Below are positions 811 to 56,900 of a DNA stretch of 64,000 bases, piece by piece; the stretch's first letter is position 1; every line of letters begins with the position of its first letter. The stretch covers positions 55,366,001 to 55,430,000 of the forward strand of contig NW_027361697.1 in the NCBI RefSeq assembly GCF_039654945.1, given 5' to 3'. The DNA comes from Dendrobates tinctorius. Its lineage: Eukaryota. Under the pieces are notes generated by a model, which saw nothing but the letters and a program-made list of their open reading frames with translations, searched no databases and was not told where the DNA came from. A program made the position numbers and the translations under genes.

Positions 811-3672
811 TTAGAGGTGCGCAACTGCTGCCTGGAGAATCTTTCTTCCCAGGCTTGCATCCGAGGATGCCTGGGTATGTACGTTATAATGTTTGACAAA
901 CGTATGTAAACTGGACCAGGTAGCTGCTTTGCATACCTGCTCCGCTGAAGCCTGGTGTCGTAGTGCCCATGAGGCACCCACTGCCCGTGCCGAGTGAGCC
1001 TTGATCCCTGCCGGAACCGGCGTGCCACTGATTTGATAAGCTTCTTGGACCGTCAGGCGAACCCATCTGGCCAAAGTCGCTCTGGACGCAGCAAGCCCCT
1101 TCCGCCGTCCCTCTGGAACCACGAATAGAGCGTCTGTCTGGCGGAATGGCGCCGTCCTTGTCACATACCTCCTAAGAGCTCTTACCAGATCCAGGGTGTG
1201 CAAAGCCTTCTCTACCCTGTGCACCGGTGCCGGGCAAAACGAGGGTAAGACGATGTCTTCGTTGATATGAAATGCAGACACAACCTTCGGCAAGAAGGGG
1301 GGAGCTGGCCTTAAAACTACCTTATCCTTATAAAAGGTTAGGAACGGTGGTTTACAAGATAAGGCCGCCAATTCCGAAACCCGCCTAATAGACGTTATGG
1401 CTACTAGAAAAACGACCTTCCTGGACAGGTAAGGTAAGGAGACCTCTTGCAATGGTTCGAAAGGGGCCTCCTGAAGGGCTCTGAGCACCAAGTTCAGGTC
1501 CCATGATTCCGTCGGCGCCTTATAGGGGGGTACTAAATGTGCGACCCCCTGCATAAACGTCCTAACCTGCCAGACGGAAGCGACTTTTCGTTGGAAAAGT
1601 ACCGACAGGGCCGAGATTTGCGTTCTGAGGGAACTCGGGGCCAACCCTGCGTCCAGCCCTGCCTGTAGAAAAGCCAGTACGTTGGGGATCGAAAAAACCA
1701 GAGGAGCCACTTCACGATCCCTACACCAACGGAAGAAAACTTCCCAAGTTCGATGATACACCCTCGCCGAGGAAGGCTTTCGGGCACTCACCATCGTGGC
1801 CGCCACATCGCGTCTGAATCCTGCCTGTGTTAACAGCCAAGATTCAATGGCCACGCCGTCAAACACAGGGCCCCTAAGTTCGGATGGCAGATCGGCCCTT
1901 GGGACAGTAAGTCCGGCCGATCTGGAAGACGCCAGGGTACGTCCACCACTAGTTGGACCAGATCTGCGTACCAGGCCCGCCGGGGCCAGTCTGGGGCCAG
2001 CAGAATTGCTGGAACCTTCTCTCTCCTTATTTTCCTGATAACTCTTGGAAGCAGCGGCAGCGGGGGGAACAAGTACGGGAGACGAAACTGGTTCCACGGG
2101 AGCACCAGCGCGTCTGCTGCGATTGCCTGCGGATCGAGGGATCGAGCGACAAACCTTAGTACTTTGGCATTCTCTCTGGATGCCATAAGGTCCACGTCTG
2201 GTGTCCCCCACCGTTGGCAGATCTGCTGAAAGATCTCGGGGTGCAGGGACCATTCTCCTGCCGCGACCCCCTGTCGGCTGAGAAAATCTGCCGCCCAGTT
2301 TTCGACTCCTGGAATGTGCACCGCTGAAATTACCACGCGGTTCTTCTCCGCCCAACGTAGTACCAGTCCGACCTCGCGCATGGCTGCCTGGCTGCGCGTG
2401 CCCCCTTGATGGTTGACATATGCTACTGCTGTAGCATTGTCCGTCTGGATGCGCACCGGCCGGTGTCTCAGGAAACACTGGAAATGTTGTAGGGCCAATC
2501 GTATTGCCCGTATCTCCAGAATGTTGATCGGGAGAACTATCTCCTGAACGGACCACCGCCCCTGGGCTATGTGACTCTGGAAAACTGCTCCCCAACCTTG
2601 CAGGCCTGCATCGGTCGTCACCACCAACCATTGTTCCGGGGGAAAGGGTTTCCCCTGGACCAGAGACGAGTCGCGAGTCCACCACCGGAGTGAACCCCGT
2701 ACCAGCGGAGACAACTTGCACCGATGACTGAGAGACAGCAGCCTCCGGTCCCATGCTGTCAAGAGCGCATGCTGAAGCGGACGGAGATGGAACTGGGCAA
2801 ACGGGATTGCTTCTATCGCCGCCACCATTCTGCCCAAAACACTCATGCCATACCGGATGGATCTGGAGCCCGGCTGTAGAAGGTTCCGTATCCCTTGCTT
2901 GATTTTTTGCGCCTTGTCCTGAGGGAGGATCACCAGCCCCCGGGAGGTGTCGAAAATCATGCCCAGGAACACGATTTTTTGGGCTGGAACCAAAGACGAC
3001 TTGCTCCAATTGATCAGCCAGCCCAGACGGGCCAGGGTATCCAGAGTAATACTGACATTGTCCTGGCACTCCTGAAACGACGGCCCCTTTACCAAAAGGT
3101 CGTCCAGGTAAGGTAACACCGTTATGCCCCGTGCATGCAGGATGGCCATAACCACCGCCATTATCTTTGTAAAGACTCTGGGGGCAGTGGCCAGACCGAA
3201 GGGCAGAGCCACGAATTGGAAGTGACGTCCTCCGATCGCAAATCGCAGGAACCTCTGGTGTGGGGGGAATATCGGAATATGCAGATATGCATCCTGCACA
3301 TCGATTGAGGCCAGGAATTCCCCTGGATCCATGGCTGCAATGACCGAGCGGAGGGATTCCATCCGGAATCGCCTGACCCTGATGAATCTGTTTAGGATCT
3401 TTAGATCCAGAACCGGCCTCACAGTCCCGTCTTTTTTGGGGACCGAAAAAAGATTGGAGTAAAACCCCTGCGACTCTTCGCCCTGCGGCACTGGGGCGAT
3501 GACCCCTTTGTGCTGTAGCGATGTTACAGCCTGTAACAAACTCTCCGCCTGCGAATCTGTTTTGGAAAGTCGCGAACGGAAGAATCGCTGAGGTGGCCGT
3601 CCGACAAACTCTATCTTGTACCCGGACGATACAAGTTCTGCCACCCAAGTGTCGCGTGTCACTGCGACCCAA
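811..3672 (-). CDS. DIRS copy 1 tyrosine recombinase ORF with long N-terminal extension overlapping Pol
   Basis: C-terminal about 340 aa have YR catalytic motifs (IRRVSEL, HSAR, ATW, KHY); frame is stop-free back to the gag TGA at 3738-3736. Confidence 0.93.
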   Translation of the reverse strand: MGRSDTRHLGGRTCIVRVQDRVCRTATSAILPFATFQNRFAGGEFVTGCNIATAQRGHRPSAAGRRVAGVLLQSFFGPQKRRDCEAGSGSKDPKQIHQGQAIPDGIPPLGHCSHGSRGIPGLNRCAGCISAYSDIPPTPEVPAICDRRTSLPIRGSALRSGHCPQSLYKDNGGGYGHPACTGHNGVTLPGRPFGKGAVVSGVPGQCQYYSGYPGPSGLADQLEQVVFGSSPKNRVPGHDFRHLPGAGDPPSGQGAKNQARDTEPSTAGLQIHPVWHECFGQNGGGDRSNPVCPVPSPSASACALDSMGPEAAVSQSSVQVVSAGTGFTPVVDSRLVSGPGETLSPGTMVGGDDRCRPARLGSSFPESHSPGAVVRSGDSSPDQHSGDTGNTIGPTTFPVFPETPAGAHPDGQCYSSSICQPSRGHAQPGSHARGRTGTTLGGEEPRGNFSGAHSRSRKLGGRFSQPTGGRGRRMVPAPRDLSADLPTVGDTRRGPYGIQRECQSTKVCRSIPRSAGNRSRRAGAPVEPVSSPVLVPPAAAASKSYQENKEREGSSNSAGPRLAPAGLVRRSGPTSGGRTLASSRSAGLTVPRADLPSELRGPVFDGVAIESWLLTQAGFRRDVAATMVSARKPSSARVYHRTWEVFFRWCRDREVAPLVFSIPNVLAFLQAGLDAGLAPSSLRTQISALSVLFQRKVASVWQVRTFMQGVAHLVPPYKAPTESWDLNLVLRALQEAPFEPLQEVSLPYLSRKVVFLVAITSIRRVSELAALSCKPPFLTFYKDKVVLRPAPPFLPKVVSAFHINEDIVLPSFCPAPVHRVEKALHTLDLVRALRRYVTRTAPFRQTDALFVVPEGRRKGLAASRATLARWVRLTVQEAYQISGTPVPAGIKAHSARAVGASWALRHQASAEQVCKAATWSSLHTFVKHYNVHTQASSDASLGRKILQAAVAHL

Positions 3673-3737
3673 ACGTGGCTGAACCTTAGTAGGCGTCCGC
3701 CCACTCTGTCGTCCGTAGGTACGGAGTGCCTCCAGTC
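1830..3737 (-). CDS. DIRS copy 1 Pol: reverse transcriptase, RNase H, Dam-like methyltransferase domain (true start uncertain)
   Basis: VGGRL N-terminal motif, LPFGL, YLDD, TTDA..GWG, LEIRA, TDN, N..AD.LSR, and DLMAS...YLFPP methyltransferase-like motifs; frame open from 4010. Confidence 0.95.
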   Translation of the reverse strand, partial: DWRHSVPTDDRVGGRLLRFSHVWVAVTRDTWVAELVSSGYKIEFVGRPPQRFFRSRLSKTDSQAESLLQAVTSLQHKGVIAPVPQGEESQGFYSNLFSVPKKDGTVRPVLDLKILNRFIRVRRFRMESLRSVIAAMDPGEFLASIDVQDAYLHIPIFPPHQRFLRFAIGGRHFQFVALPFGLATAPRVFTKIMAVVMAILHARGITVLPYLDDLLVKGPSFQECQDNVSITLDTLARLGWLINWSKSSLVPAQKIVFLGMIFDTSRGLVILPQDKAQKIKQGIRNLLQPGSRSIRYGMSVLGRMVAAIEAIPFAQFHLRPLQHALLTAWDRRLLSLSHRCKLSPLVRGSLRWWTRDSSLVQGKPFPPEQWLVVTTDAGLQGWGAVFQSHIAQGRWSVQEIVLPINILEIRAIRLALQHFQCFLRHRPVRIQTDNATAVAYVNHQGGTRSQAAMREVGLVLRWAEKNRVVISAVHIPGVENWAADFLSRQGVAAGEWSLHPEIFQQICQRWGTPDVDLMASRENAKVLRFVARSLDPQAIAADALVLPWNQFRLPYLFPPLPLLPRVIRKIRREKVPAILLAPDWPRRAWYADLVQLVVDVPWRLPDRPDLLSQGPICHPNLGALCLTAWPLNLGC

Positions 3738-5178
3738 ATTTAGCTGGAGGCTTTTGGGGCTTGGCCCCCTTCGCTCTGGGTAAATGGCCTCGGCCTCTAC
3801 CCAGCGGATTGGCCCTGTAAGAGACTTGTTTTTCCCTACTCTGGCCATCGTTTGCGGAGGAGTACGCCCTGGCCGAAGTCCCCCCCCAGGGGCTACGAAA
3901 GGGTCGAAAACGCCTTTGCGTTTGCCTGAATGCCGGGCAACTTCTCTGCTGCGGAAGGAAACTACTTTTCCCCCCTGTGGCTTCTGAGATAAGCTTGTCC
4001 AGCTTCTCACCGAACAGTCGATTGCCCTGAAACGGCAATGAGGTTAAGGATTTTTTAGAGATAGAATCCGCTTTCCACAGTCTCAGCCATAATGCACGCC
4101 TAATGGCGATCGCATTTGCCGCCGCCACCGCCGAGCACTCGGCCGCGTCCAGTGAGGCGCTGACAAGATAATCACTTGCTCCTGACATCTGATTTGCCAC
4201 CTCTACGACCTCCGCGGGGAGATCCCTGTCCTGGAGGGCCTTATACAGAGCGTCCCCCCACGAAACCATGGCCTTAGCCACCCAAGTCGCCGCAAAGGAG
4301 GGGGCCAGAGCCGACCCTGCTGCCTCATATACCGAGCGGGCAAGCCCGTCCATGAGGCGATCAGTTGGGTCCTTTATAGAGGAAACACTGGGTATCGACA
4401 ATAGCGATCTTGATGCTAAACGTGATACCGGAGGGTCCACTACTGGCGACTCTACCCAAGCCTTATGGAGCTCAGGAGGAAACGGATACTTTGCCTGCAG
4501 CGCTTTTTGCATTGCAAAACGCTTATCCGGGTGATCTCTATGTTTCTGGACTAGCTCCTCAAACTCCGGATGCGTGGCAAATCTTCTATGTGGTCGCCTG
4601 GATTTCTTAAAAGAGACCTTGTGACCTGAGGCTGTGGGCACATCGTCCTCGATCTCTAATGTCTGGTTGACTGCCTCAATGAGACTGTCCACCGAATCCT
4701 GGAACCCCAGACTTTCTAGATTCCAGGCCTCTTCCTCCTCTCCTTCATCCTGATCGCTCCCAGAGCTCAGTGACGGGGAACGGGATGCCCTAATACCCGC
4801 CGCCGAAGCCCCGGAGGGTCCGGCTGACGGGGAACGAACCCTCTTGATATGAGCTTGCCTGGTACTGGAGCGACCTCTAATGGTTGGAGGGTCCTGAGAC
4901 GAGGACGAGCTCTCTTCCGCCGGCAGACCCCCCTCCCTGCTCCTGCCCGGGCCCTGAAGGGATTCAATTGCCCTTGTAAGGGACAGCATAGACTGCGATA
5001 AGGACACCGCCCATTCCGGGGGGTCCTGACCCCTGGGTTCAGAAACAGTGGGGGGCTCCTGGGCGCGCTCCGACTCACAGGCTTCACAATATTTACCCGC
5101 CTGTGCCTTTGGCAGCCTGACCCCACAGGACACGCAAACCGCGTAAAGGAAAGAGTGAGCTTTCCCTTTGGCAGACAT
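3736..5178 (-). CDS. DIRS copy 1 ORF1 Gag (N-terminal CxxC...CxxC finger; LAP2alpha-like C-terminal domain)
   Basis: First ATG 5178 (MSAKGKAHSF...CVSC...CEAC) within ORF 3736..5265; P-x-VDPPV, RRALWL, LFG motifs typical of vertebrate DIRS Gag. Confidence 0.88.
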   Translation of the reverse strand: MSAKGKAHSFLYAVCVSCGVRLPKAQAGKYCEACESERAQEPPTVSEPRGQDPPEWAVSLSQSMLSLTRAIESLQGPGRSREGGLPAEESSSSSQDPPTIRGRSSTRQAHIKRVRSPSAGPSGASAAGIRASRSPSLSSGSDQDEGEEEEAWNLESLGFQDSVDSLIEAVNQTLEIEDDVPTASGHKVSFKKSRRPHRRFATHPEFEELVQKHRDHPDKRFAMQKALQAKYPFPPELHKAWVESPVVDPPVSRLASRSLLSIPSVSSIKDPTDRLMDGLARSVYEAAGSALAPSFAATWVAKAMVSWGDALYKALQDRDLPAEVVEVANQMSGASDYLVSASLDAAECSAVAAANAIAIRRALWLRLWKADSISKKSLTSLPFQGNRLFGEKLDKLISEATGGKSSFLPQQRSCPAFRQTQRRFRPFRSPWGGTSARAYSSANDGQSREKQVSYRANPLGRGRGHLPRAKGAKPQKPPAK

Positions 5179-6629
5179 ACTTGCACAGGCTGAAGGCAGA
5201 GTAGAAGGAGGAGGAGGGTAACCTCTTCCCTGACAAGCAGCGTGGTTCTCCAAACGGAGATACACTCACCCACCGGCTCCTGTCTGCAGTACCCCTGCGT
5301 GGATGCGAGGTGTTAGGGCGGAAGTCTCTCCGGAACCTATATCGCGCGTCTCCGCATTCGCCGCCGCCACCGCCACGTCAGCGGGCGGGATTTCCGGCTA
5401 CCACCGGAAGTCAGCGGGCGGGACTTCCGGCTACCACCGGAAGTCGGCGCGCGACTTCGCGCGATTGCAGCGGGGCCGCGACCGCCGGCGGGCTTCCGGC
5501 CGCGCTCCGATACACGCGGCGTGCGGAGCCCGGGTGCAACGCCAACTTGCGGTGCGCTCCAGGAGCGGATCCCCCATATATTAAAAGGTGAGCAGGACCA
5601 TCCGCCGTGCAGGCGGGGGGGGGGGGGGGCTCTGTCGGTTTTACTCGCGGCCTCTTCCCCCTGTACCGGAACCCCCGCTCCCGCTCTCACCTGCGCCTCC
5701 GATTCAGCCCCCTGGACTCACAACCAAGGGGTGGACGGGGCCTCCATACACTGCTGTTGTAGGAGAGGAACAACGTGGAGGCTGACCACTGGTTCTGCTC
5801 ACACGCGCCTGATGAAGTTGTGGGGAAACCGAGTCCTCTAATCAGGACGCGTTGCCCCTCTTTCGTTAAAAAATAGATGTCTGGAAAAAAGTCCCAGATG
5901 TGTCCCTCGGTGCGGGAGAGGACACGTGGAGGGTTACTCACACGTGGTCGCCCGTTGGTGATTTGGGGAGATCGGATCCTCTCTATAGGATCCGTCGCCC
6001 CTATCTTATCTTCATAGAAAAAAGGGAAAGAAAAAAAAAAAAATCTAGTCTGGAACTCCAGACTGCGTGTGCCTCCATCAGACACTAAGCAAAAACTGAG
6101 TTACGCCCGGCCTAGGGGCGAGGGTGTATGCGGCGGAGGAGGAGCTAACTCTTTTTTTGTACACTTAGTGTCGGCCTCCAGACGGCAGAAGCACACACCC
6201 ACAGTCTCTGTGTCCCCCAATGAGACGAAGGAGAAACTGCACATTTAAAGAACATTAGAAAATATAACATGCAAAATGACGCAAAAGCAGCGAGGTTCAA
6301 AGGTATAACGATCGCGGTCAAAGAGGCTGCAACTTCAACTGGGTCCATGAGGGAGAGGGCCCCGCAGATGCCAAAGGCTATTTCAGCTGGATGTGCGTAC
6401 GAGGATACACATTCAATTGAAATACTTTATGGTGCAGAGACCTGCTGAGTCCCTGCACTGCAATATACTAAACCGGCTAATGAGAGGCCAGCAGCTGACA
6501 TCGGCCATACGTCACCCATAGCAGGCACACCAATATTAGCGGCAATCATCTGTGCTGGCTACAGAAGAGGACGCCGCATGACATGGGAGCGGGGGTAAGT
6601 GAGTAGAATGAACGTTTACTTATTATGGG

Positions 6630-15051: not shown

Positions 15052-16652
15052 CAGTGGGGCAAAAAAGTATTTAGTCAGTCAGCAATAGTGCAAGTTCCAC
15101 CACTTAAAAAGATGAGAGGCGTCTGTAATTTACATCATAGGTAGACCTCAACTATGGGAGACAAACTGAGAAAAAAAAATCCAGAAAATCACATTGTCTG
15201 TTTTTTTTTCATTTGATTTGCATATTATGGTGGAAAATAAGTATTTGGTCAGAAACAAGCAATCAAGATTTCTGGCTCTCACAGACCTGTACTTCTTCTT
15301 TAAGAGTCTCCTCTTTCCTCCACTCATTACCTGTAGTAATGGCACCTGTTTAAACTTGTTATCAGTATAAAAAGACACCTGTGCACACCCTCAAACAGTC
15401 TGACTCCAAACTCCACTATGGTGAAGACCAAAGAGCTGTCAAAGGACACCAGAAACAAAATTGTAGCCCTGCACCAGGCTGGGAAGTCTGAATCTGCAAT
15501 AGCCAACCAGCTTGGAGTGAAGAAATCAACTGTGGGAGCAATAATTAGAAAATGGAAGACATACAAGACCACTGAATCTCCCTCGATCTGGTGCTCCACG
15601 CAAAATCCCACCCCGTGGGGTCAGAATGATCACAAGAACGGTGAGCAAAAATCCCAGAACCACGCGGGGGGACCTAGTGAATGAACTGCAGAGAGCTGGG
15701 ACCAATGTAACAAGGCCTACCATAAGTAACACACTACGCCACCATCGACTCAGATCCTGCAGTGCCAGACGTGTCCCACTGCTTAAGCCTGTACATGTCC
15801 GGGCCCGTCTGAAGTTTGCTAGAGAGCATTTGGATGATCCAGAGGAGTTTTGGGAGAATGTCCTATGGTCTGATGAAACCAAACTGGAACTGTTTGGTAG
15901 AAACACAACTTGTCGTGTTTGGAGGAAAAAGAATACTGAGTTGCATCCATCAAACACCATACCTACTGTAAAGCATGGTGGTGGAAACATCATGCTTTGG
16001 GGCTGTTTCTCTGCAAAGGGGCCAGGACGACTGATCCTGGTACATGAAAGAATGAATGGGGCCATGTATCGTGAGATTTTGAGTGCAAACCTCCTTCCAT
16101 CAGCAAGGGCATTGATGATGAAACATGGCTGGGTCTTTCAACATGACAATGATCCAAAGCACACCGCCAGGGCAACGAAGGAGTGGCTTTGTAAGAAGCA
16201 TTTCAAGGTCCTGGAGTGGCCTAGCCAGTCTCCAGATCTCAACCCTATAGAAAACCTTTGGAGGGAGTTGAAAGTCCGTGTTGCCAAGCGAAAAGCCAAA
16301 AACATCACTGCTCTAGAGGAGATCTGCATGGAGGAATGGGCCAACATACCAACAACAGTGTGTGGCAACCTTGTGAAGACTTACAGAAAACGTTTGACCT
16401 CTGTCATTGCCAACAAAGGATATATCACAAAGTATTGAGATGAAATTTTGTTTCTGACCAAATACTTATTTTCCACCATAATATGCAAATCAAATGAAAA
16501 AAAAACAGACAATGATTTTCTGGATTTTTTTTTCTCAGTTTGTCTCCCATAGTTGAGGTCTACCTATGACGTAAATTACAGACGCCTCTCATCTTTTTAA
16601 GTGGTGGAACTTGCACTATTGCTGACTGACTAAATACTTTTTTGCCCCACTG
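15052..16652 (+). mobile_element. Tc1 (DD34E) transposon, transposase 15418-16438 with one frameshift near 15575
   Basis: CAGTGGGGCAAAAAAAG...TTTTTTGCCCCACTG about 200-bp TIRs, TA flanks; MVKTKELSKDTR..., [22 protein letters not shown]. Confidence 0.95.
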
Positions 16653-16807: not shown

Positions 16808-18379
16808 TGCCTACAAGTAGTATTCAACCCCCTGCAGATTTAGCAGGTTTACACATTCGGAATTAACTTGGCATTGTGACATTTGGACTGTAGATCAGCC
16901 TGGAAGTGTGAAATGCACTGCAGCAAAAAAGAATGTTATTTCTTTGTTTAATTTTTTTTTAAATTGTGAAAAGTTTATTCAGAGGGTCATTTATTATTCA
17001 ACCCCTCAAACCACCAGAATTCTGTTTGGTTCCCCTAAAGTATTAAGAAGTATTTCAGGCACAAAGAACAATGAGCTTCACATGTTTGGATTAATTATCT
17101 CTTTTTCCAGCCTTTTCTGACTATTTAAGACCCTCCCCAAACTTGTGAACAGCACTCATACATGGTCAACATGGGAAAGACAAAGGAGCATTCCAAGGCC
17201 ATCAGAGACAAGATCGTGGAGGGTCACAAGGCTGGCAAGGGGTACAAAACCCTTTCCAAGGAGTTGGGCCTACCTGTCTCCACTGTTGGGAGCATCATCC
17301 GGAAGTGGAAGGCTTATGGAACTACTGTTAGCCTTCCACGGCCTGGACAGCCTTTGAAAGTTTCCTCCCGTGCCGAGGCCAGGCTTGTCCGAAGAGTCAA
17401 GGCTAACCCAAGGACAACAAGGAAGGAGCTCCGGGAAGATCTCATGGCTGTGGGGACATTGGTTTCAGTCAATACCATAAGTAACGTACTCCACCGCAAT
17501 GGTCTCCGTTCCAGACGAGCCCGTAAGGTACCTTTACTTTCAAAGCGTCATGTCAAGGCTCGTCTACAGTTTGCTCATGATCACTTGGAGGACTCTGAGA
17601 CAGACTGGTTCAAGGTTCTCTGGTCTGATGAGACCAAGATCGAGATCTTTGGTGCCAACCACACACGTGACGTTTGGATGGATGGCACTGCATACGACCC
17701 CAAGAATACCATCCCTACAGTCAAGCATGATGGTGGCAGCATCATGCTGTGGGGCTGTTTCTCAGCCAAGGGGCCTGGCCATCTGGTCCGCATCCATGGG
17801 AAGATGGATAGCACGGTCTACCTGGAGATTTTGGCCAAGAACCTCCGCTCCTCTATCAAGGATCTTAAGATGGGTCGTCATTTCATCTTTCAACAAGACA
17901 ACGACCCAAAGCACACAGCCAAGAAAACCAAGGCCTGGTTCAAGAGGCAAAAAATCAAGGTGTTGGAGTGGCCTAGTCAGTCTCCTGACCTTAACCCAAT
18001 TGAAAACTTGTGGAAGGAGCTCAAGATTAAAGTTCACATGAGACACCCAAAGAACCTAGATAACTTGGAGAAGATCTGCATGGAGGAGTGGGCCAAGATA
18101 ACTCCAGAGACCTGTGCCGGCCTGATCAGGTCTTATAAAAGACGATTATTAGCTGTAATTGCAAACAAGGGTTATTCAACAAAATATTAAACTTAGGGGT
18201 TGAATAATAATTGACCCACACTTGTATGTTTAAGATTTATTAAAATTTAACTGAGCAACATAACTTTTTGGTTTGTAAGATTTATGCATCTGTTAATAAA
18301 TCCTGCTCTTGTGTGAAGTTTGAAGGCTCTAACTTATTTGCATCTTATCAAACCTGCTAAATCTGCAGGGGGTTGAATA
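16805..18379 (+). mobile_element. Tc1 transposon, right TIR runs into the assembly gap
   Basis: CAGTGCCTACAAGTAGTATTCAACCCCCTGCAGATTTAGCAGGTTT left end; its reverse complement reappears at 18350-18379. Confidence 0.93.
17171..18190 (+). CDS. Tc1 transposase, uninterrupted ORF, DD34E
   Basis: MGKTKEHSKAIRD paired-like HTH; WSDETK; QQDNDPKH followed by E exactly 34 residues after the D (NPIE). Confidence 0.92.
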   Translation: MGKTKEHSKAIRDKIVEGHKAGKGYKTLSKELGLPVSTVGSIIRKWKAYGTTVSLPRPGQPLKVSSRAEARLVRRVKANPRTTRKELREDLMAVGTLVSVNTISNVLHRNGLRSRRARKVPLLSKRHVKARLQFAHDHLEDSETDWFKVLWSDETKIEIFGANHTRDVWMDGTAYDPKNTIPTVKHDGGSIMLWGCFSAKGPGHLVRIHGKMDSTVYLEILAKNLRSSIKDLKMGRHFIFQQDNDPKHTAKKTKAWFKRQKIKVLEWPSQSPDLNPIENLWKELKIKVHMRHPKNLDNLEKICMEEWAKITPETCAGLIRSYKRRLLAVIANKGYSTKY

Positions 18380-18960: not shown

Positions 18961-19650
18961 TCTGGGGTCAGAACCAGAGCGCTAAGTGGAACGTTCCTAA
19001 CTTCCATACCTTTAAGAGAGGCCTTGTGTCAGAACCAGAGCACTGAGTGGATTTGCCCTGACTTCCATGCCAATGATCCCTTTAATAGAAGCCTGGGGTG
19101 AGAATCAGAGCGCTGAGGGATTTACCATAACTTCCATACAGGAGATCCCTTTACGAAGAGGCCTGGGGTCAGTACCAAAGTGCAGAGTGGATTTGTCCTC
19201 ACTTCCATACCGGGGATCCCTTTAAGAGGGGCCTTGGGTCAGAACCAGAGCGCTGAGTGGATTTCCACTGACTTGCATACGAATGATTCCTTTAATAGAA
19301 CACTGGGGTCAGAATCAGAGCGCTGAGGGATTTGCCCTAACTTCCATACAGGAGATCCCTTTAAGAGAGCCTGGAGTCAGTACCAGAGAATTTGAAGGCA
19401 ATTATCCTGACTTCCATTCTGGAGATCCATTTAAGAAAGGCCTGGGGTCAGTACCAAAGCGCAGAGTAGATTTGCCCTAAATTCCATACCAATGATCCCT
19501 TTAAGAGAAACTGGGGTCAGAACCACAGAGCTGAGTGGAACGGTCCTAACTTCCATACCGGAGATCCCTTTAAGAGGGTCCTGGGGTCAAGACCAAAGCG
19601 CTGGATGAATTTGCTTTGACTTCCATACCAATGATCCCTTTAAGAGGGAA
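18961..19650. repeat. Minisatellite, about 70-bp unit, about 10 copies
   Basis: CTGGGGTCAGAACCAGAGCGCTGAGTGGATTTGCCCTGACTTCCATACC...GATCCCTTTAAGAG repeats. Confidence 0.9.
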
Positions 19651-20778
19651 GATGTGCCTATATGATGGAGGATGTGTGATATGTAAATGGTTACAGGAGG
19701 GGGGGGGATTCATTTCTGTCATGTGCTCTCTGCTCCTTTTTGGGGGGCAGACAATGGCTGGGAGCTTATGTTTCCAGGGATGCTAGATTTCTCCTACCAT
19801 GTCAGAGTCTGCTGAGGTGTTGTCAAGTGGGAAAACTTGCTCATACCAACCAATCATAGCTCGGCTTCTTTTAACCAGCTCTGTTGAAATGAAAGATGCT
19901 TCGTGATTGGTTGGTGATACACACACACATTCAGTATATATAATTATTTATATAGCACCATTGATTCCATGGTGCTGTACATAAGAAGGGGGTTACATAC
20001 AAATTACAGATATCACTTACAGTAAACAAACTTACAATCACAGACTGATACAGAGGGGAGAGGACAGTGCCCTTTTGGGCTTACATGCTACAGCATGGTG
20101 GGGAAGGAGACAGTAGGTTGGGGGGGGTTGCAGCATTTCCATGTTGGTTGAGGTGATATCTCCAGTAGTGGTGAGGAGGTAGTGGGGTCATTACAGGCTG
20201 TAGGCTTTCTTGAAGAGGTGGGTTTTTAGATTCCGTCTGAAGGATCCGAATGTGGTTGATAGTCGGACATGGTGGGGCAAAGAATTCCAGAGGATGGGGG
20301 CTATTCGGGAGAAGTCTTGGAGGCGGTTGGGTGAGGAGCAAATAAGTGTGGAGGACAGAAGGAGGTCTTGGGAGGATCAGAGATTACGTGAGGGAAGGTA
20401 TCGGGAGATTAGTTCAGAGACAGGTTATAGATGGCTTTGTAGGTCAGTATTAGTTATTTGAACTGGATACGCTGAAGGAATGGAAGCCAGTGAAGAGATT
20501 TGCTGAGGGGAGAAGCGGAGGAGTAGCGAGGAGAGAGATGGATTTGTCGGACAGCCGAGTTAAGGATGGACTGGAGAGGTGCGAGGGTGTTAGCAGGGAG
20601 ACCACAGAAAAGGATGTTAAAAACATATGTGACATGCACAAGTGTGAACAAGTCAGTAAGACAATGCTCACACCACCCAATGGCTGAAACACAACAAAAG
20701 AACACAAAATGACAAATTTGCAAAAATACTCTGCAGTAAAAACATGACAATAATCAGCAAGTGCTGTATAACAAATAC

Positions 20779-20859
20779 AGGGCATTTAGTCGATACGTTT
20801 TTTGCAAAAAATGTATACCAAGCCGCTTCACCACGTCACGGTAACCCTTCACGAAGCAG
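20779..20859 (-). ncRNA. Putative HDV-like self-cleaving ribozyme (A1)
   Basis: P1 CTGCTTC/GAAGCGG, P2 AGGGTT/ATGCCCT (one bulge), P3 ACC/GGT, L3 GTGACGT, P4 ATAC-A-T6-GC-A6-C-GTAT, J4/2 A-C-T-A-A. Confidence 0.62.
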
Positions 20860-21192
20860 TCCCTATCTAATGTATTTAAAACCTGAACATGTGAACAGTG
20901 TCTAAATGAACAGGATACAGACAGGCGCCTCCTAGTATATGGGCTTGTGGTGTAAGACAGCTCATTTATGTGCATGTCACACAGGAGAGGGGTGCGGTCT
21001 CCCAAACCATGCTTAGCAAGGAAAAACGGATTAAAAACATATGTGACATGCACAAGTGTGAACAAGTCAGTAAGACAATGCTCACACCACACAATGGCTG
21101 AAACACAACAAAAGAACACAAAATGACAAATTTGCAAAAATACTCTGCAGTAAAAACATGACAGTAATCAGCAAGTGCTGTATAACAAATAC

Positions 21193-21273
21193 AGGGCATT
21201 TAGTCAATACGTTTTTTGCAAAAAATGTATACCAAGCCGCTTCACCACGTCACGGTAACCCTTCACGAAGCAG
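21193..21273 (-). ncRNA. Putative HDV-like self-cleaving ribozyme (A2)
   Basis: Near-identical tandem copy of A1. Confidence 0.62.
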
Positions 21274-22728
21274 TCCCTATCCGTGACGTGGTGAAGCGGC
21301 TTGGTATACATTTTTTGCAAAAAACGTATAGACTAAATGCCCTGTATTTGTTATACAGCACTTGCTGATTACTGGACGTGCAGCTCCAGGAGTTTGGAAA
21401 CGAATGGGAGCAGCAATATTCGGCGATAGCTGGACATAGCGGTTGGGTCGAGGGTTGGCTTTTTAAGGATAGGCGTGATTGTATATATGTTTTATAACAT
21501 AACAAAAGTGAGTGCTTCATTGCTGTCAGGAGTTCTATAGTCATTGTATAAAACATAATTTTATGGAGTCATACAGCCAGGGAGGAGGAGAGTAGATGAG
21601 CCCATGGTGTATTTGGAGACCGTGTTTATTTAAAGGTGTGTGCGGCATGACAGTGCTTGCAGGCACAGATGACGTGTTCTGAGATCGGGGAACTGAACAT
21701 AGATAATATCCTGGCAGACTATGTGATAATGGGATAGTTCATTATTATGTAGTGCAGCACATATACTATTCTATATGGTAACCTCTATGCAGTATTTGGC
21801 CCTTTAGGCTGTGTTCACATGTTGCAGCCACATAAATATCATGTTTTGCTTTTGATAAGTGCTAAAAGCAGCTTCATCATTAATACAATGTACATCCATT
21901 GCGCTGCAAAATCAAGTTATTTGCTATCCCTTTGCAGATCGCTTGGGATCCAACTGCTGGATCTCTCAGCGATCTTGAAATTGGTGTACTGAAATCCTGT
22001 GAGCTCTGCGGTCCAATCCTGAATGAAGCAGAGATACACAGGCATGACCTCCGCTCCATTCACTGCCTATGAGACTGTACTCCGCAGCCCCACAGATAAT
22101 GGATGGACCTGAATGCACACCTCTGCGCCATTTAGCAAGAGACCAGTCAATCACCTGGAGCTGCAATCGTGTAGTCAGACTCTGGTTCATGCTGCCCGTG
22201 ACTTGGGCCACCTGAATCAGCCAACAGGTTCCCTTTAAAGCACAATAGCCATCATTTATCAAGTGTAGCAGTTTGTATGCCATTCCAGATGACGTGTGTA
22301 CTGGAGTAAAATGCACCAAATTTATAAAGAAAAGTGAGCCCCTTAATTAATTTTGAGTATATTTTAGCTGCCATGCACCACCGCAAGAAATGTATGTGTG
22401 TGTCAGAAATTATGATGAATTTGTCAAGTATGCTCAGTCACGCCCCATTTTCCCACTTTTCGAAAAGTCAGTGATGTGGCCGAAACTGGTATTAAAATGT
22501 AAAAATGTTGCAATATTTTTGAGCAACTATGAGTTTCAGAAAAAAATTTACAAAATTTCAAGTAGTTTAACTCCAGGAAACTGGAAAAACTGATGAATCG
22601 GGTTTGATGAATATTACTATAGTAATAAGTAACACTGTATAGAAAGTTACTGTGTGCAGACGGCGACAACACTCTGAAATGATACCATGATCGTGGTGAT
22701 CATCAAAGTATCTTTGCATGCAAATAAA

Positions 22729-22749: not shown

Positions 22750-22814
<65 letters not shown>

Positions 22815-23821
22815 ATATATGTTTGTGTGTGTGTATGTCCGGGATTGGCATCCGCACCGTTGCAGTTACAGCCACAAAATTTTGCACAGTCACACGTCTG
22901 GACCCCGAGAGCGTCATAGGCTATGTTGTGAGGCAAAATTTTAACCCCGCGCATTCTAATTCACCAAACAATTTTGCCCCTATTTACATAATGGGGAAAA
23001 AGTGAAAGGAAAAGTGTTGGAGGCAAATTGGCAGCTGCCAGATGTGAACAAGGGGGGACTTAAAGAATGAGAGCGATGGCGCCAAAGAGTATATACCGTA
23101 CAGTTGCTAAGGTGGGGCCCTGACATGAGATACTCACCACACACGGGATATGAGCACACACACACAAAATGCGCCACACACTACCATGTGCTTCAACACA
23201 TATACCACCCTCAGCACACATTTCACCACACATACACCAACCTCGCCACATAAAAGTCGAAACACAAAAGTTGCCACTCAAAACTCATCACGCTGTCCCA
23301 GAGCTGTTTAAAAGATGAAAAATGAGCTGTGATTGGTTGCTATCAGCAACAGTTTTCTTTGTAGACAGTTGTGGTAACTGAGGCCTATTATTCTTATCAT
23401 TTCTATGGTGTTATCGTCCTTCTGTAAAGCTGGAAATAACACAATTTATTACCGTGCCAACACAGACCACCCTCTGACACAGACTGCAGGGTGAGCCCAG
23501 TATCACACAGGACAGGATTAGATACACAGCTCAGCAGTCAGTATCACACAGAATAGGATTAGATACACGGCTCACTAGTCAGTATCACACAGGATAGGAT
23601 TAGATACACAGCTCAGCAGACAGTATCACACAGAATAGGATTAGATACACGGCTCAGCAGACAGTATCACACAGAATAGGATTAGATACACGGCTCAGCA
23701 GTCAGTATCATACAGGATAGGATTAGATGCACAGTTTTTATGTGCAATATAATCATTATAATTTGTTATAACTATCCACAGTTGGTTACTATACCCAGGC
23801 AACGCCGTGCTCATCAGCTAG
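22729..23821 (+). mobile_element. Non-autonomous Helitron-like element (possibly composite)
   Basis: A|TC start, (GT)n near the 5' end, subterminal hairpin and CTAG|T end; no TSD. Confidence 0.65.
23498..23735. repeat. Minisatellite, about 41-bp unit, about 6 copies
   Basis: CAGTATCACACAGAATAGGATTAGATACACGGCTCAGCAGT repeats. Confidence 0.92.
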
Positions 23822-50533: not shown

Positions 50534-53425
50534 CATTGATTTCAATTGAGTCAGTCAAATCTGCAGCAAAAACGCGGGTGTAAAAAGGTTTGCGTTTTTG
50601 CTGCGTATTTACTGCTTATTTGCTGCAGATTTGCTGCCAAAAACGCTGCAAATTGTCAAAGGAAATTATGTCAGAAGGAGGAAGTGTGTGTGGGCGGAGA
50701 ATGTGTGTCTCTGTCTGTACCCATGCAACGAACAGCCCATAGTGATTGTACTTAGGCGTCGTCTGATGGGACTACTACTCCCATCCGGCTACGTCTTTTG
50801 TCACATATAATAGACAGCATGAGCCGATGATGGGAGAATAGTCTCATCATCCGGCACATGAGTTCAATTGTAAAAAAAAAAAAAAAAAAAAATTAATTAC
50901 ATACATATTCACATACAAAATACATACTCACAGATCACCTAATCCCCGAAGCCCGGATTTCCTGCAAACAATCAAAAATGGTAAACCAACATATACTCGC
51001 CTTTCCGCCATAGTCCATTTAATACCGAGTGTCCCATGACAGATCTCATGCTGTATCACTGTGCTGCCGTGTTAGTTCACCGGAGTTCAGCAGCTGATCA
51101 GCTCCGGTTCTCGCGCAGCGGTGCCCTAAGTGAGAGCACCGGAGCTGATGAATTTCGGTGAACTCGAACAGTAGCGATGCACTGCAGGAGCGATTACCTC
51201 CTGTCTATCACCGGAGGCTGGATAGAGCGGTGTGTTACACGTGAGATCGCCGGTGGACACTCAGTAATAAGTGGACTACGTCGGACAGGATAGTATTATA
51301 TGTTTTATTTTTTTATTTTTTTTTTATTATTTGCAGAAGACGAGGGTGTCGGGGATTAGGCATTCAGTATGGTAACGTCTCTCCATTACTAACCTGTGGG
51401 CTTGATGTCACCTGACAACACAAAGGTGACATCAACTCCACAAATGTGAACTCCACTTGCGACTCCTACAGGGCAAGTGGGAAGATCGAGGCTAAGTGCC
51501 AGAATTGGTATGTAATGATATTATGATCTTCAATAGAGAATGAAAAAGAAGAGGTTAAACAAGGAAATTACATCACAAATTCTTTTTTTAGCTCTATGGA
51601 TTTAAAAAAAAAAAAATGCATGAAAAAGTGCATGCAAAAACATAGAAGCCTATCTTCATAATTTTTATATAGGAGTTACTAAAACACATGAGTTCAGTTG
51701 CACGGCTATGTCCATAACTTTCATAGCGAATATAGTGAGTACCATAGACATGTGCGGCCTCTTCTCTATTTACTCTCTGCCTGGATGCGATGGCATGAGC
51801 TCGTCACACCGTTTGGTTCACAGGACCCCTGTTCATTACGTTATTGAGTCCCACATCTATCAGTAGATAAGTCACAATGGATAGTCATAGATAATTTCCC
51901 GGCTGTCTAACAATTGTCTTTGTCTGTGATTTCCCTTTGCGTTGAGTAGTAAATCCTGGTTCAGCAAATGAGCAAGTTGTGCTAATATTAAGCATATGAA
52001 AATGTATTCACAATCACAGCACTGCTTGCAGAATTGAATGGGTTGTCCACTACTCACCACCCCCCCCCCCCCCCCCCGTAAAATAAATACACTTTATACT
52101 CCCCTTCTGTGCTGGCATTGTTCCAGTGGTGTCGGCACTAGTTCTTCTAGAGCTCTCAAGATATTGTCACACAATGGCAGCGGCCGCCTCACTCTCCTTT
52201 GCTATGGGCATAATTGATATCCAGAGGAGTTGAGGGACCAGCTGCAGCTCTGACTTCTTCCAGATGACATTTACGTCCAAAGGAGAGTGAAGGGACCACT
52301 GATTGACCCCAGGGATTGTGTGACAACATAATGTCAAGGAAGCCCTGGGAGAGCCAGTGCCAACGCCATTGGATTTGCGCTGGCATCGGAGGTGAGTTCA
52401 ACTGTTATTTTTCTAGAGGGAACATGGGGATTGAGAAGGTGATGTCTGAGTTGTGGACAACCTCTTTAATGTAGCCCACATACACTTGTAAAATGATCTG
52501 CCTGCGGGATCTTATGCAGTATATAGAATAGCAGCTAATTATACTGCACTATTACGGTAATTAAGAACACGACGAAACACAGTAAATATGTTTACTTGAC
52601 TTCCACTTCAGGTAGTCGTCATTATATGGCTGCAGAAAAATCTATTTAATATGACGTCAGACAAGTGGATACAGGTTGTGAAATGGCCTTCACTGATAAT
52701 TTTATACCTGTAGTGAAAACGAAAAGGATTTGTGCTTATTACATTCAGAGACCTTCATTCCCTGGTATGATCATTTGGAGGATAAAAAAGTCCAGTTTCT
52801 GACACGTCTCTGCTTATAGAGTCGGGGTCCTGATCAGTGGATCCATGTGGCTTAGTAGGGCGTGTAGTCAGAGATTGTACAGATTAAGAGCAGCTCCTCT
52901 AATCTGATATTGTCTTTTTAAGTGTTTTATTTCTTCAGTGCAAGTCTCCTTATTTAGGAGTCTTTGGAATAAGGAATCTCCAGATTTCACATGATAAACT
53001 ACATACATGAAAGGAGTATACTCTTCTCAAGTTCGACTGCTAGGCCCACACTTCCCAATGCCGGCTAAGGAAGTTGGCTACCACACGGTAGCAACATGGA
53101 CGACTGACCAGGATCTTGCTAATCCTTTTGATCTACTCTACTGTGTACTTACTTTAAACATATACGTAAGAGTGACTATAAGAACGTTTTTTCCACTTGA
53201 TATTAGATTCAGCCTTCTAATACTGCAGATCTCTGATGCTAATGACACATCCTCTCTGATCCACGGTTCTCCAGCGCCATCAGGTCATTGACCATTACCA
53301 ACTGAAATTAAACACATGGTCCATGCACACAGTGAACAACACAGTACAACAAACATATAAAAATACTCTGTTGTAAAAAAAAAGTAACAGTAAACAGCAA
53401 GTGCTAGTAAAAAGATAACAAAACA

Positions 53426-53509
53426 GGGTATTTGGTTGAAACGTTTTTTTGTAAAAAATGTATACTTAGCCGCTCTACCAAACATCAAGGTATACCCATA
53501 TCAGAGCAG
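53426..53509 (-). ncRNA. Putative HDV-like self-cleaving ribozyme (B1)
   Basis: P1 CTGCTCT/AGAGCGG, P2 GGGTAT/ATACCC, P3 ACC/GGT, L3 TTGATGTTT, T6/A7 P4, J4/2 A-C-C-A-A. Confidence 0.62.
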
Positions 53510-53857
53510 TCCGTAACCGATGTACGTATTTAAAAACCTGACCATGTGTATGGTACCTATATGAGCAGGATGCAGAAAGGTAATGTCCGGGGTGGACACG
53601 CTGTGGAAGACGGCTTATATGTGCACCGCCCACAAGGGAGGGGTGAGACCTCCCTAATCTTGCAGAAACAAGAAACCAATTGAAAATAAACACATGGGCC
53701 ATGCACACAGTGAACAAGTCTGTATGACAGGGATCACACCACCAAAAGACTGAAACACAGGAAAACACAGTACAACAAACGTATAAAAATACTGTTGAAA
53801 AAAAAAAAAAAAAAAGGTAACAGTAAACAGCACGTGCTAGTAAAAAGATAACAAAAC

Positions 53858-53942
53858 GGTATTTGGTTGAAACGTTTATTTGCAAAAAATGTATACTAAG
53901 CCACTCTACCAAACGTCAAGGTATGCCCCCATATCAGAGCAG
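53858..53942 (-). ncRNA. Putative HDV-like self-cleaving ribozyme (B2)
   Basis: Tandem copy; L3 TTGACGTTT; P2 has one mismatch; the array ends at the predicted cleavage site. Confidence 0.55.
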
Positions 53943-56900
53943 AGTATTTTTATACGTTTGTTGTACTGTGTTTTTCTGTGTTTCATTGACCACAACCAGT
54001 CCACTGTCAGCACGTAGAGGGAAATGATGTATCCTCATAGGGCTGGATGGGTCACGCCTGGAATAAATATTCATGGTGCACAGGGTTGTTTTTCTATTCT
54101 CCTCCAGTGATCTGTGCAGATAACAGACCTGGTAAGAGTCGGACAGGTGACGTTTTGGAGAAACCTGATAATCTACTTTGTATTTGGCTGATGAATACAA
54201 GAGTTTCATGGAGTAAATTGCTAGAAGCCTAAGTCCTGCACTGTGCTCGCTGCACCCGAGCCGCCTCCAGCAGATCTGCCGCCATTCCGGGAATGGTAAT
54301 CGCAGCCAATCTGAGGAGATGATTGTGAATTATTAAGTTGGCTTCTTCCTGGCTAATGCGCTTGCAGCTCCGGCATGGAAACACTTTTGCAGTCGTTCCT
54401 GTTGCCATTATAGATTTCATGCTCATCCGGGAGGCACTGTATCGAAATATATTATTCCTAAAAGCTGTGGACAGAGACTGCTGTGGTTTTCCATTGTTTC
54501 ACCAGCTGGTTTTTATTACATTGTCGAGGGGAATAACAGGATGTGAGCCGGGCTGTTTTGTGATGATTGGAGCCAGCTTATGTACTAGTTTTTCATCAGA
54601 AATTATTAACTTGGGGTCTGTGCCCATGATACAGATTTGTCACAAAACCTGATTGCAGCAAAGTGACAGAGTCCTGAAGTCTTGTACACATTGCTTATGC
54701 TGTGCAGAGTGAATTCTGCAGCATGGCAATTCTGTCAGTGTTTTTTGCTGCAGGTTTCACCCATACTAATGAATGGGGAAATTCTGCAACAAAAAAAAGC
54801 GTGTTTAAAAAAAAAAAAGCACATATTTTACTCGGGGTTTTTTTTTTTTGCCCCAAATACTTAGTTTGCACATTCTCTAATAGAGATTACTGCATTTTAT
54901 ACAGTAAGTTGACTCTTAAAGCCCAATTCGTTATTGAATTTGTGTGTTTTTTTTCATTTTGGCGTTTTTCATTTGTGCCTTCTTGTAATGACTCTTTTAT
55001 ATGCATTTCCCTGGTGTGTGTGTGTTTTTTATTTATTTTTTTAAGAGTTGTCCACTACTAGGACAACCTCTCTTCACTTCTCTGAGTGTTTTCCCCTGTT
55101 AAAATAAAAACATCTATATTCTCCTCCCGTGCCGGCGTCATTCCAGCGGTGTCAGCACTCACTTTCCAGGGCTCACATGAGGTTATGTCACGTGCGCCCA
55201 GTCAGCGGCAGTATCACTGTCCCCTTTTTCTCCTTCGCCTCATTGGGGGACACAGACCATGGGTGTTATGCTGCTGACAATAAGTAATACAAAGAAAGTT
55301 AGCTGCTCCTCTGCAGTATACACCCGCATGCTGGCTCCCAGAAAACCAGTTCTTACTTAGTGTCCGTATGTTAAAGCGGATGGTACAAGGAGGCAGTTGG
55401 TCCCTCTCCACCTCCCTATTAAAGGGATGGTGGATTGAGGGTTACCCCTTTACCTCTGCACCATCCAAGACCAGCAGCAGCAGGAGGACCTGCAACATAC
55501 CTGGTTTACCTGCCACCCGGCAGTTTCTCCGGGTATGTGCCAGGTCTGGAGGGCTCTTTTCAGGAGGTCTGGGGCGGCGCTGGCATAAGGAGGCTCATAC
55601 TGCAGCCGGGGGGGCACGACATCCGACCCCTTCTTGCGTTGGCCGGCACTGAAAAATTTAGCCCGCGGCTTCGGTCTACAAGAAGCGGCTCTGAGATTCT
55701 CGTTGGCCTTCTCGCTCTCCCCCACGACTGCCTCACGAGCTGGCATCCGGAAGCGGCTGCGGCATATTATCCGACGGCATTCAGCGCTGAGGACAGCGCT
55801 AATCCAAAATCCAACGGACTCAAGATCCGGGTAAGGAGGCGCTGCCCCCCCCCCCCCCCCCGCAGTACCTCCGGCAGAGAAATGAAGTAAGGGCAAAAGA
55901 AGAATAAAAAAAAAAAACTGTACACTTTTGCCCCAGTGACGGCATGTCTTTAGCTGGTTTTCTTTACGCAGAAATCTCCGTGTAACTGCAGGGGTGCCGC
56001 CATGTAAACTATTGCAGCACCAGTAAGCCTTTACAAACTGCAGTCACTTAAAATACTGTTCTGCCTACTGTGGTTAGAGTACTCACTGGTCTTAAAGGCG
56101 CATGACCAGTCTAGAGTCCCCAATTACAGTCTTCTTAATCCGCCAGTCACTTCTCGCCCACTGCGAGAGTGTCTTTGTTGATTCACGCCGACTATCTTGG
56201 ACTCAGGTGATGGGCAAGCGGCTCCAGTGGTACTTAAGTCCCACAAGCCGTCATACTATAGCGTACAGCATTTCTTTCCCCAAGGAGGAAAACGACTGTC
56301 CTCAGGGGCACAGCATCTGGGTAAGTGCTGCACATACAAATTACTCACATGCTTCCCCTTTTTAGTCAAAGTACTCTGCTGTACAACTTTGCAGGGCTAC
56401 GCTGCCTTACAGCTGCGCTGGTGTATACCTCTAGCATTCCCTGCAGTGTACAAACTATGCCGCTCTGTGTCACCTGTGATCCTAAACACGGCTTGTGACC
56501 CCTAATACGCTCAGGAGCCCTCCACTGTCACCAAGTCTGGTGTACTTAGTCCCCTCAAGTGGGCTTCGTCAATGTCACAATTCATGGCCTCTCTGGCCAA
56601 AGGCAGAGGGATTCCCCTCTTTAGATCGGCCAGCTTCCAGCTGACTGAGGTAGATGGATCCTCTCCTACAAGGGAGTCGTCTCCTTGCGGCCCCTGCTAG
56701 CCTTCTACAATCGTGCAAGCGTCTAGAAAAGGGATCCGTAGTACTCCTACTGAGCTATCATGTGTCTTGGCATCCGAGCTCCGCTGCTCGCTCTCTCTCA
56801 CCAGAGGTCTGTAGCGAACATGATTCTGAGTATGATTCGGAGGTTTACTGGCTCTGGTTCTGACAGTTTTCCAGAAACCGGCGGATTCACTTTCTTGAGG

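Follow-up and report, generated by a model that had tools for sequence, protein, structure and literature searches.

A tandem-repeat retroelement of Dendrobates tinctorius whose units carry a candidate HDV/CPEB3-type ribozyme

Introduction

Does a short, non-coding tandem repeat in the genome of the frog Dendrobates tinctorius belong to a mobile RNA that cuts itself with a ribozyme of the hepatitis delta virus (HDV) type? The question is raised by locus A, an insertion at positions 20617–21374 on the minus strand of a 64-kb stretch of this 6.36-Gb genome (the window, by which we mean the whole stretch analysed). HDV-like ribozymes are known from the 5′ ends of long interspersed nuclear elements (LINEs), from one mammalian intron and from delta-like agents. 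Within retroelements they have been described only at LINE 5′ ends, and the animal retrozymes without long terminal repeats (non-LTR retrozymes) and Penelope-like elements (PLEs) have been described only with hammerheads. These retrozymes are 150–450-bp tandem repeats of low GC content with target-site duplications (TSDs); they use ligation by RtcB and derive from PLEs (Cervera & de la Pena 2020, PMC7229834; Li, Clavereau & Pollet 2026, bioRxiv 10.64898/2026.07.22.740005). We consider it fairly probable, from comparison of genomic copies and structural models, that locus A represents an insertion of a retroelement of this same kind, non-autonomous and non-coding, built of 404–433-nt units and carrying a candidate HDV/CPEB3-type ribozyme.

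Results

Locus A holds 1.6 direct copies of a 414-nt unit and a 94-nt inverted piece. Read along the minus strand, it begins with the inverted arm (21281–21374, itself on the plus strand; unit positions 27–120), continues with one full unit (20868–21281, unit position 1 being 21281) and ends with the first 251 nt of a second unit (20617–20867). A repeat search agreed with this reading: 20617–20867 and 21031–21281 form a 251-nt direct repeat at a spacing of 414 nt (99%), and the arm is 99% complementary to 21162–21255. The non-coding tandem repeat of about 414 bp claimed in the original prediction is borne out by these data. Tandem Repeats Finder missed the array because it contains fewer than two copies. 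The full unit belongs to subfamily S1 and is 96–98% identical to other genomic copies, and the partial unit stops at one of the two canonical 3′ ends of the family (...AUGUUUUUAA). The inverted arm lacks the 5′ strands of helices P1 and P2 and so holds an incomplete ribozyme; its outer end, at unit position 120, is non-canonical. No TSD is visible in either flank of locus A. The flanks (window 20290–20616 and 21375–21470, minus strand) are two non-adjacent LINE-like coding pieces, with the peptides ...LLPFVSKLLELHV upstream and ILFCGLP...SLHWLPFLQRIQFK downstream. Together, the end of the arm, the lack of a visible TSD and the non-adjacent flanks suggest a deletion on the inverted-arm side, at or after insertion.

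On the minus strand, each full copy of the unit contains segments in the order P1-J1/2-P2-P3-L3-P3′-P1′-J1/4-P4-J4/2-P2′, with a 7-bp P1 that abuts a 3-bp P3. The HDV-like motif is 81 nt long and is present at 21193–21273 (copy 1) and 20779–20859 (copy 2); we number it from r1, which is 21273 or 20859, respectively. The predicted cut (GGGA↓CUGC) falls between 21274 and 21273 in copy 1 and between 20860 and 20859 in copy 2. In copy 2, the P1 5′ strand CUGCUUC (r1–7, 20853–20859) is directly followed by J1/2 (GUGA), then by the P2 5′ strand AGGGUU (20843–20848), by P3 ACC, L3 GUGACGU and P3′ GGU (together 20830–20842) and, directly after P3′, by the P1 3′ strand GAAGCGG (r31–37, 20823–20829). 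J1/4 is CU (20821–20822), and its C38 pairs with the L3 G as the single P1.1 pair. The P4 hairpin AUAC-A-UUUUU/AAAAA-C-GUAU (20791–20820) leads to J4/2, aCUAA (20786–20790), with the candidate catalytic cytosine at 20789 (r71; 21203 in copy 1), and the motif closes with the P2 3′ strand AUGCCCU (r75–81, 20779–20785), for which the family majority is AUACCCU. The 37-nt core of the motif, CTGCTTCGTGAAGGGTTACCGTGACGTGGTGAAGCGG, occurs exactly twice (20823–20859 and 21237–21273, minus strand), where shuffled sequences give an expectation of 0. The segment string of the original prediction is therefore literally there in each full copy, and the caveats attached to it were correct: L3 starts with G, P2 has a U·U mismatch or bulge, UUGGU can pair with ACUAA and lengthen P4 (as in the minimum-free-energy structure), and the array extends 8 nt upstream of the predicted cut.

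An HDV descriptor hit the window only at 20859, 21273 and 53509. The descriptor was written after the motif had been seen, and 0.1–0.3 hits are expected by chance in a shuffled 64-kb window. For a genome of 6.4 Gb such a match is weak evidence by itself; its weight comes from comparison within the family.

That family is large. A search of the genome with the unit gave 2,344 first-look candidates; every scored match was 92–100% identical, and the matches lie in short arrays on many contigs. Overall there are at least 4,000 units in at least seven subfamilies, 404–433 nt long and 66–86% alike. Exact 15- and 16-nt words spanning P2-P3-L3 were counted genome-wide, each against a control word: the locus A type occurred 1,066 times (control 21), the UUGACGU type 2,512 times (control 4) and the contiguous-P2 type 450 times (control 2). 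No run on record as RNA was found to contain the sequence; contigs of four runs, from two organisms, gave a matching range of variants, most copies having U at L3 position 1. Whole units were compared using eight natural subfamily representatives of 404–433 nt (alignment A2), which have a GC content of 38–41% and share no conserved open reading frame (ORF); the hammerhead core CUGANGA is absent from both of their strands. Median identity is 96.9% in S1 (to the window copy), 97.9% in S2, which has the canonical L3, and 91.9% in S5. S1 copies are accordingly young, about as recent as those of S2, and S5 is older. Rare variants from contig loose ends were rejected as further subfamilies; they are decayed copies, with 4–6 genomic copies each.

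Approximately 100 arrays were mapped in 90 fetched loci (L001–L090). In every subfamily, the arrays end at two homologous sites, unit positions ~180–191 (...UGUGUUUCA) and ~250–263 (...UGUGUUUUUAA, in S5 ...UGUGUUUAUAUUC), and at their 3′ junctions 1–4 nt are shared with the target as microhomology. These ends are internal to the unit and away from the predicted cut, and none of the mapped arrays has a poly(A) or microsatellite tail. TSDs of 7–34 bp flank simple arrays (34 bp at L015; also L002, L007, L020, L023 and L027). In about half of the insertions, two arrays lie head to head, 3′ ends outward, inside a single TSD (L004, L005, L009, L012, L014 and L029), and such a pair inside one duplication implies that cDNA synthesis was primed on both target strands. 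Arrays span more than one unit and continue across internal predicted cut sites; their 5′ ends are variable, reflecting 5′ truncation. The mixture of tandem and inverted copies at locus A, in which the original prediction saw a resemblance to Penelope insertions, is the normal insertion form of the family.

Because thousands of dispersed copies occur together with TSDs, fixed 3′ ends and 5′ truncation, it is essentially certain that the locus A family is a non-coding mobile element that spreads through RNA, and the claim of mobility in the original prediction was right. The family spreads by target-primed reverse transcription into multi-unit cDNAs, and priming of the 3′ end takes place next to UGUGUUU at either of two sites. 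Both canonical 3′ ends come just after this heptamer, ~68 nt apart in the unit, in all subfamilies (e.g. L001:1493–1906, minus, and L073:1501–1921, minus), and the adjacent site may be where reverse transcriptase starts. Some arrays of the UUGACGU subfamily are long palindromes: on contigs C5 (24315719–24320049) and C3 (68942258–68945949), 5–6 units are followed by 5 on the other strand, at a spacing of ~426 nt.

Tandem units of a few hundred bp with an HDV-like motif could also be expected of an ordinary satellite or segmental duplication without an RNA intermediate, or of an integrated deltavirus-like or viroid-like agent. Such origins are contradicted by the insertion anatomy, since thousands of dispersed short arrays each have their own TSD, a fixed 3′ end and 5′ truncation. 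The representatives have no conserved ORF such as that of delta antigen, and viral and metagenome contigs gave no match beyond chance. In scans of those contigs, the P3-L3-P1′ core pattern was hit 119 and 25 times, by sequences that match the pattern only, which we put down to chance. We regard an origin of this kind as extremely unlikely.

To judge whether the fold is kept, we aligned 134 distinct ribozyme regions, with completeness as the only filter, and counted the pseudoknotted structure (alignment A1). Standard pairs made up 93.4% of cells, versus 43–54% with the 3′ partners slid by 1–3 columns. P1, with 95% of its cells paired, exists in six states (CUGCUUC/GAAGCGG, /GAAGCAG, /GAGGCAG and /GGAGCAG, CUGUUCC/GGAGCAG, and CUGCUCU/AGAGCGG), all of which keep 7 bp. 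Five of the seven P1 pairs vary, always with preservation of pairing, and two are compensated on both sides: r6–r32 is U-A, U·G or C-G, and r7–r31 changes from C-G to U-A (49 and 51 doubly changed cells). At the subfamily level, P3 ACC/GGU, the L3 core UGACG, the P1.1 pair G-C38 and the C..AA of J4/2 are invariant, as is GGGU/ACCC of P2 in the family. J1/2 is hypervariable, with at least six forms. The remaining differences fall on the 3′ side of L3 (1–3 U; other subfamilies have UUGACGU(U)(U)), in the P4 loop and a paired U/A insertion in its stem, and at the N of C-N-A-A, where U or C is found (ACUAA in 124 and ACCAA in 56 of 203 copies). Outside P1, the subfamily-level differences all sit where the HDV fold is tolerant. 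The single G-C pair of P1.1 is present in 127 of the 134 copies, with a U·U beside it, which is the same strength as in the CPEB3 and L1Tc ribozymes. Taken together, this pattern makes a self-cleaving ribozyme of HDV type in the family plausible.

The older subfamily S5 is represented in the window by locus B (53297–53985, minus strand), which is 69–74% identical to locus A and belongs to the same family. Its P1 is CUGCUCU/AGAGCGG, and its P2 is contiguous. In S5, an extra A creates the contiguous P2 GGGUAU/AUACCC, which is mismatched in other subfamilies, and leaves a J4/2 of exactly 4 nt; because of these two features, only the S5 form passes the strict descriptor. The spacing from the candidate catalytic C to P2′ is canonical in S5, whereas S1–S4 have two extra nucleotides or a bulge between them. 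At locus B, a short inverted piece (unit ~143–185) is joined exactly at the predicted cleavage site (...AAAAAUACU↓CUGCUCU), where the array starts; taken at the level of the population, this start is weak evidence.

The same retroelement could, however, carry an HDV-like string that does not cut. Its pairings would then belong to a global branched or rod-like RNA structure or to a binding site for reverse transcriptase, and the resemblance would be a coincidence made possible by short helices. We judge this alternative to be possible, although on the unlikely side. A number of observations agree with it and weigh against a ribozyme. The double changes are confined to two adjacent P1 pairs and can be traced to one or two events. 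Among the 134 copies, there is no covariation, and there are no double changes, in P2, P3, P4 or P1.1; P2 is the helix that makes the pseudoknot, and P1 with P3 is a plain hairpin with an internal loop. The covariation proposed as a check in the original prediction thus appeared between subfamilies in P1 and failed to appear in P2 and P3. For whole units, RNAalifold favours nested alternatives that pair the P1 3′ strand (r32–r40) with unit positions ~320–330, a helix with one compensated pair of its own; other long stems covary too, for example ~225–240 with ~295–310. Conservation in the ribozyme region does not exceed that of the rest of the unit, and the isolated 85-nt domain is not unusually stable (z from +0.5 to −1.6 in a pseudoknot-free model). 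C1-G37 is found in 119 of 134 copies, so that there is no G1·U37 wobble at the predicted cleavage site, and the young, successful S1 has G at L3 position 1. The Rfam ribozyme families, whose models are narrow and blind to pseudoknots, gave no match at the gathering score in the window and none at E ≤ 10 for locus A and four other subfamilies. All the Rfam hits were to miRNA hairpins, spurious and caused by palindromes.

The 5′ ends of the arrays do not peak at the predicted cut either. They fall at r1 or r2 in only 3 of ~97 cases (L012, L032 and locus B), against ~0.7 expected, an excess that is no more than suggestive. Most 5′ ends cluster at unit positions ~330–385. This clustering could reflect a stop of reverse transcriptase, a transcription start or a template switch. 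A second, loose cluster of 5′ ends in L001–L090 starts 24 nt upstream of the predicted cut and reaches 2 nt beyond it.

Several features are difficult to reconcile with a string that does not cut. The variable positions of the 81 nt are all ones that HDV tolerates (J1/2, the 3′ side of L3, the P4 loop and the N of C-N-A-A) or preserve pairing. L3 and P1.1 mirror those of CPEB3 with a swapped pair, and the extra A of S5 repairs P2 exactly. Moreover, the fixed 3′ end lies 95–160 nt downstream of the motif, and for this reason the typical insertion (x + 1 unit + 183 or 251 nt), locus A included, has two complete motifs around exactly one unit. Finally, comparable animal elements all carry a self-cleaving ribozyme.

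Whole monomers are more stable than shuffled sequences (z = −2.8 and −3.8). By this measure the whole unit RNA is under structural selection, which would fit a retrozyme or viroid-like RNA but also an RNA that is not catalytic. The RNA may alternate between two states, a fold that cuts and a stable global fold. Helices with compensated pairs outside the ribozyme model include two long-range ones, at A2 columns 37–45/354–363, which uses the P1 3′ strand, and 256–272/335–351.

Locus A itself departs from the HDV rule at one position of L3. The first and sixth residues of L3, which form the trans G25·U20 pair, are U and G in all of 508 natural HDV sequences. They are U and G in S2–S5 (UUGACGU...), whereas position 1 is G in locus A and S1 (GUGACGU). 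In the antigenomic HDV ribozyme, the equivalent G23/G28 variant keeps activity but is 470-fold slower. By this analogy, the locus A subfamily is probably a slow cutter. The success of S1 would mean that fast cutting is not needed, or that cutting is slow, or that the HDV rule is not transferable.

We then compared the motif with known ribozymes. The antigenomic HDV ribozyme has J4/2 CUAA and P3 ACC/GGU, as does the frog family. HDV and deltavirus-like circular RNAs resemble the frog family in candidate ribozyme type and in that the active fold competes with a stable global structure. They differ in that the frog family is DNA-encoded, has no antigen ORF, has a unit of ~0.4 kb versus ~1.7 kb and carries the motif on one strand only. 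In CPEB3, L3 is U20-U21-C22-A23-C24-G25-U26, and P1.1 is one G-C pair with a U·U (bioRxiv 10.1101/2022.09.22.508989). The frog family resembles it in the 7-nt L3 of the form U-U-N-A-C-G-U, in this P1.1, in a P3′ that abuts P1′ and in J1/4 residues that can be captured by J4/2, lengthening P4 (same source). In the majority L3 of the frog family, UUGACGU, position 22 is G in place of C and its J1/4 partner C in place of G, so that the P1.1 pair is inverted. Further differences are that CPEB3 is single-copy and intronic with G1·U at the cut, whereas the first pair in the frog family is C-G, and that the two have no detectable sequence homology (no Rfam hit).

The precedent for the C-G start that the original prediction named is sound: the L1Tc ribozyme (L1TcRz) is active and shares with the predicted frog ribozyme a cut 5′ of C1, a 3-bp P3 and a 1-bp P1.1 (PMC3185411). 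C1-G37 in place of G1·U37 is a departure from HDV and CPEB3 but, given L1TcRz, would not disqualify the motif. In L1Tc and R2, extension of P1 by position −1 lowers activity (PMC3185411); the A at position −1 in the frog family is unable to extend P1 against C38. The HDV-like ribozymes of R2, L1Tc/NARTc, RTE and Baggins share with the frog motif a nested double-pseudoknot layout inside a retroelement. They occur once, however, at the 5′ end of a LINE or SINE-like derivative (SINE, short interspersed nuclear element), and define its 5′ terminus, whereas the frog motif is in every tandem unit and within the body of insertions whose style is Penelope-like.

This last difference bears on whether a real ribozyme might serve a SINE-like passenger of a LINE (in the style of R2, RTE, L1Tc or CR1/L2), processing its 5′ end and making no circles. 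The LINE 5′ ends of all published HDV-like ribozymes in retroelements, the three arrays that start at or next to the predicted cut and the lack of a link to a PLE would suit such a passenger. It would leave unexplained the presence of more than one unit per array, the passage of arrays across internal cut sites, a 3′ end inside the unit and the lack of a tail of poly(A) or microsatellite. Head-to-head arms in one TSD and variable TSDs are Penelope hallmarks, the GIY-YIG ORFs of the genome have the same layout, and animal retrozymes derive from Penelope terminal repeats (pLTRs). A LINE passenger is therefore very unlikely in our view.

Compared with PLEs, the frog family shows the same partial tandem copies, fixed 3′ end, 5′ truncation, head-to-head arms in one TSD and variable TSD length. 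It differs in having no reverse transcriptase/GIY-YIG ORF, and PLE terminal repeats carry minimal hammerheads, not HDV-like motifs. The Penelope-type GIY-YIG domain is abundant in the genome: there were 5,686 first-look candidates, and 150 of 150 scored above the Pfam cut-off. The open frames reach ~855 aa and often lie as head-to-head pairs a few kb apart, as at C8:61968290(−)/61974548(+), C129:35736502(−)/35745552(+) and C126:1469209(−)/1470966(+); clusters on contigs C39 and C345 contain dozens of near-identical copies. Penelope-style mobilisation of the family is likely by this comparison, and any specific PLE is a candidate partner only. Weighing against a Penelope partner, we found no sequence or positional link between the family and a PLE: no Penelope ORF stands next to an array in the 90 loci or in the window, and the GIY-YIG coordinates among the matches listed do not, by eye, adjoin the listed coordinates of the family.

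The likeness to animal non-LTR retrozymes, which occur in amphibians too, is broad. Both consist of dispersed short arrays of head-to-tail, non-coding, low-GC units (404–433 nt in the frog) that lack LTR, PBS and PPT, with TSDs of more than 4 bp around them, a single candidate small ribozyme in each unit and RNA with extensive structure. The cycle proposed for the retrozymes is self-cleavage, circularisation by RtcB and reverse transcription by a PLE. The described members all have a type I hammerhead, whereas the frog family has no hammerhead core and carries the candidate HDV-type motif.

The rest of the window is a transposon-rich neighbourhood. An ORF with RVT_1 and weak RT_RNaseH domains (1833–4010, minus strand) is preceded by an upstream ORF with a LAP2alpha-like domain (3739–5265, minus strand). 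Two Tc1/mariner (Sleeping-Beauty-like) transposase ORFs with HTH_Tnp_Tc3_2 and DDE_3 domains are located at 15626–16438 and 17162–18190 (both plus strand); the 342-aa transposase ORF looks intact. A tandem repeat with a 70-bp (or 139-bp) period, ~9 copies and 73–75% matches (19009–19646) is unrelated to locus A, and 22753–22838 is a (GT)43 microsatellite.

Discussion

The reading of the original prediction, that of an HDV-type retrozyme or an element mobilised by Penelope, is partly supported, by the mobile anatomy and the conserved fold, and is weakened by covariation in P1 only and by the attenuating G at L3 position 1 of locus A. If it holds, the motif would act as a ribozyme of the HDV/CPEB3 type that cuts at the predicted site. 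Read-through transcripts would be cut twice and release a unit-length RNA with 5′-OH and 2′,3′-cyclic phosphate ends. The tRNA ligase RtcB would then circularise this RNA, as shown for hammerhead retrozymes, and the circles would be copied in rolling-circle fashion by a reverse transcriptase acting in trans, most likely from the PLEs of the genome. We consider a Penelope-like supplier the likeliest because GIY-YIG ORFs are abundant and lie head to head, and because animal retrozymes have been traced to pLTRs. Copying of circles would also account for arrays that keep more than one unit over generations, since linear transcripts begun at an internal start would lose length in every round.

The most far-reaching version of this proposal is that the ribozyme is homologous, not convergent, with the CPEB3 and deltavirus ribozymes, and that the family is an active HDV-ribozyme retrozyme whose self-cleaving circles of ~0.4 kb are copied by Penelope reverse transcriptase. 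We think this unlikely.

The literature, searched with the core sequence as well, yielded no paper containing that sequence, no HDV-type retrozyme and no amphibian HDV-like ribozyme, in line with the original prediction, which knew of no description of such an element in frogs. If the family really cuts, it would be the first retrozyme with a delta-type ribozyme in place of the hammerhead, and the ribozyme module of circle-forming retroelements would be swappable. Should the motif prove inert, the family remains a clearly delimited and very abundant non-autonomous element of Penelope style whose RNA structure is conserved. A cutting family would offer natural variants by the thousand in which to probe the tolerance of the HDV fold, among them a change from U to G at the L3 position that binds metal. 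It would also constitute a vertebrate genomic source of delta-type ribozymes close to CPEB3 in loop sequence and, if the ribozymes are homologous, vertebrate retroelements of this kind would be a reservoir of the CPEB3 and deltavirus ribozymes.

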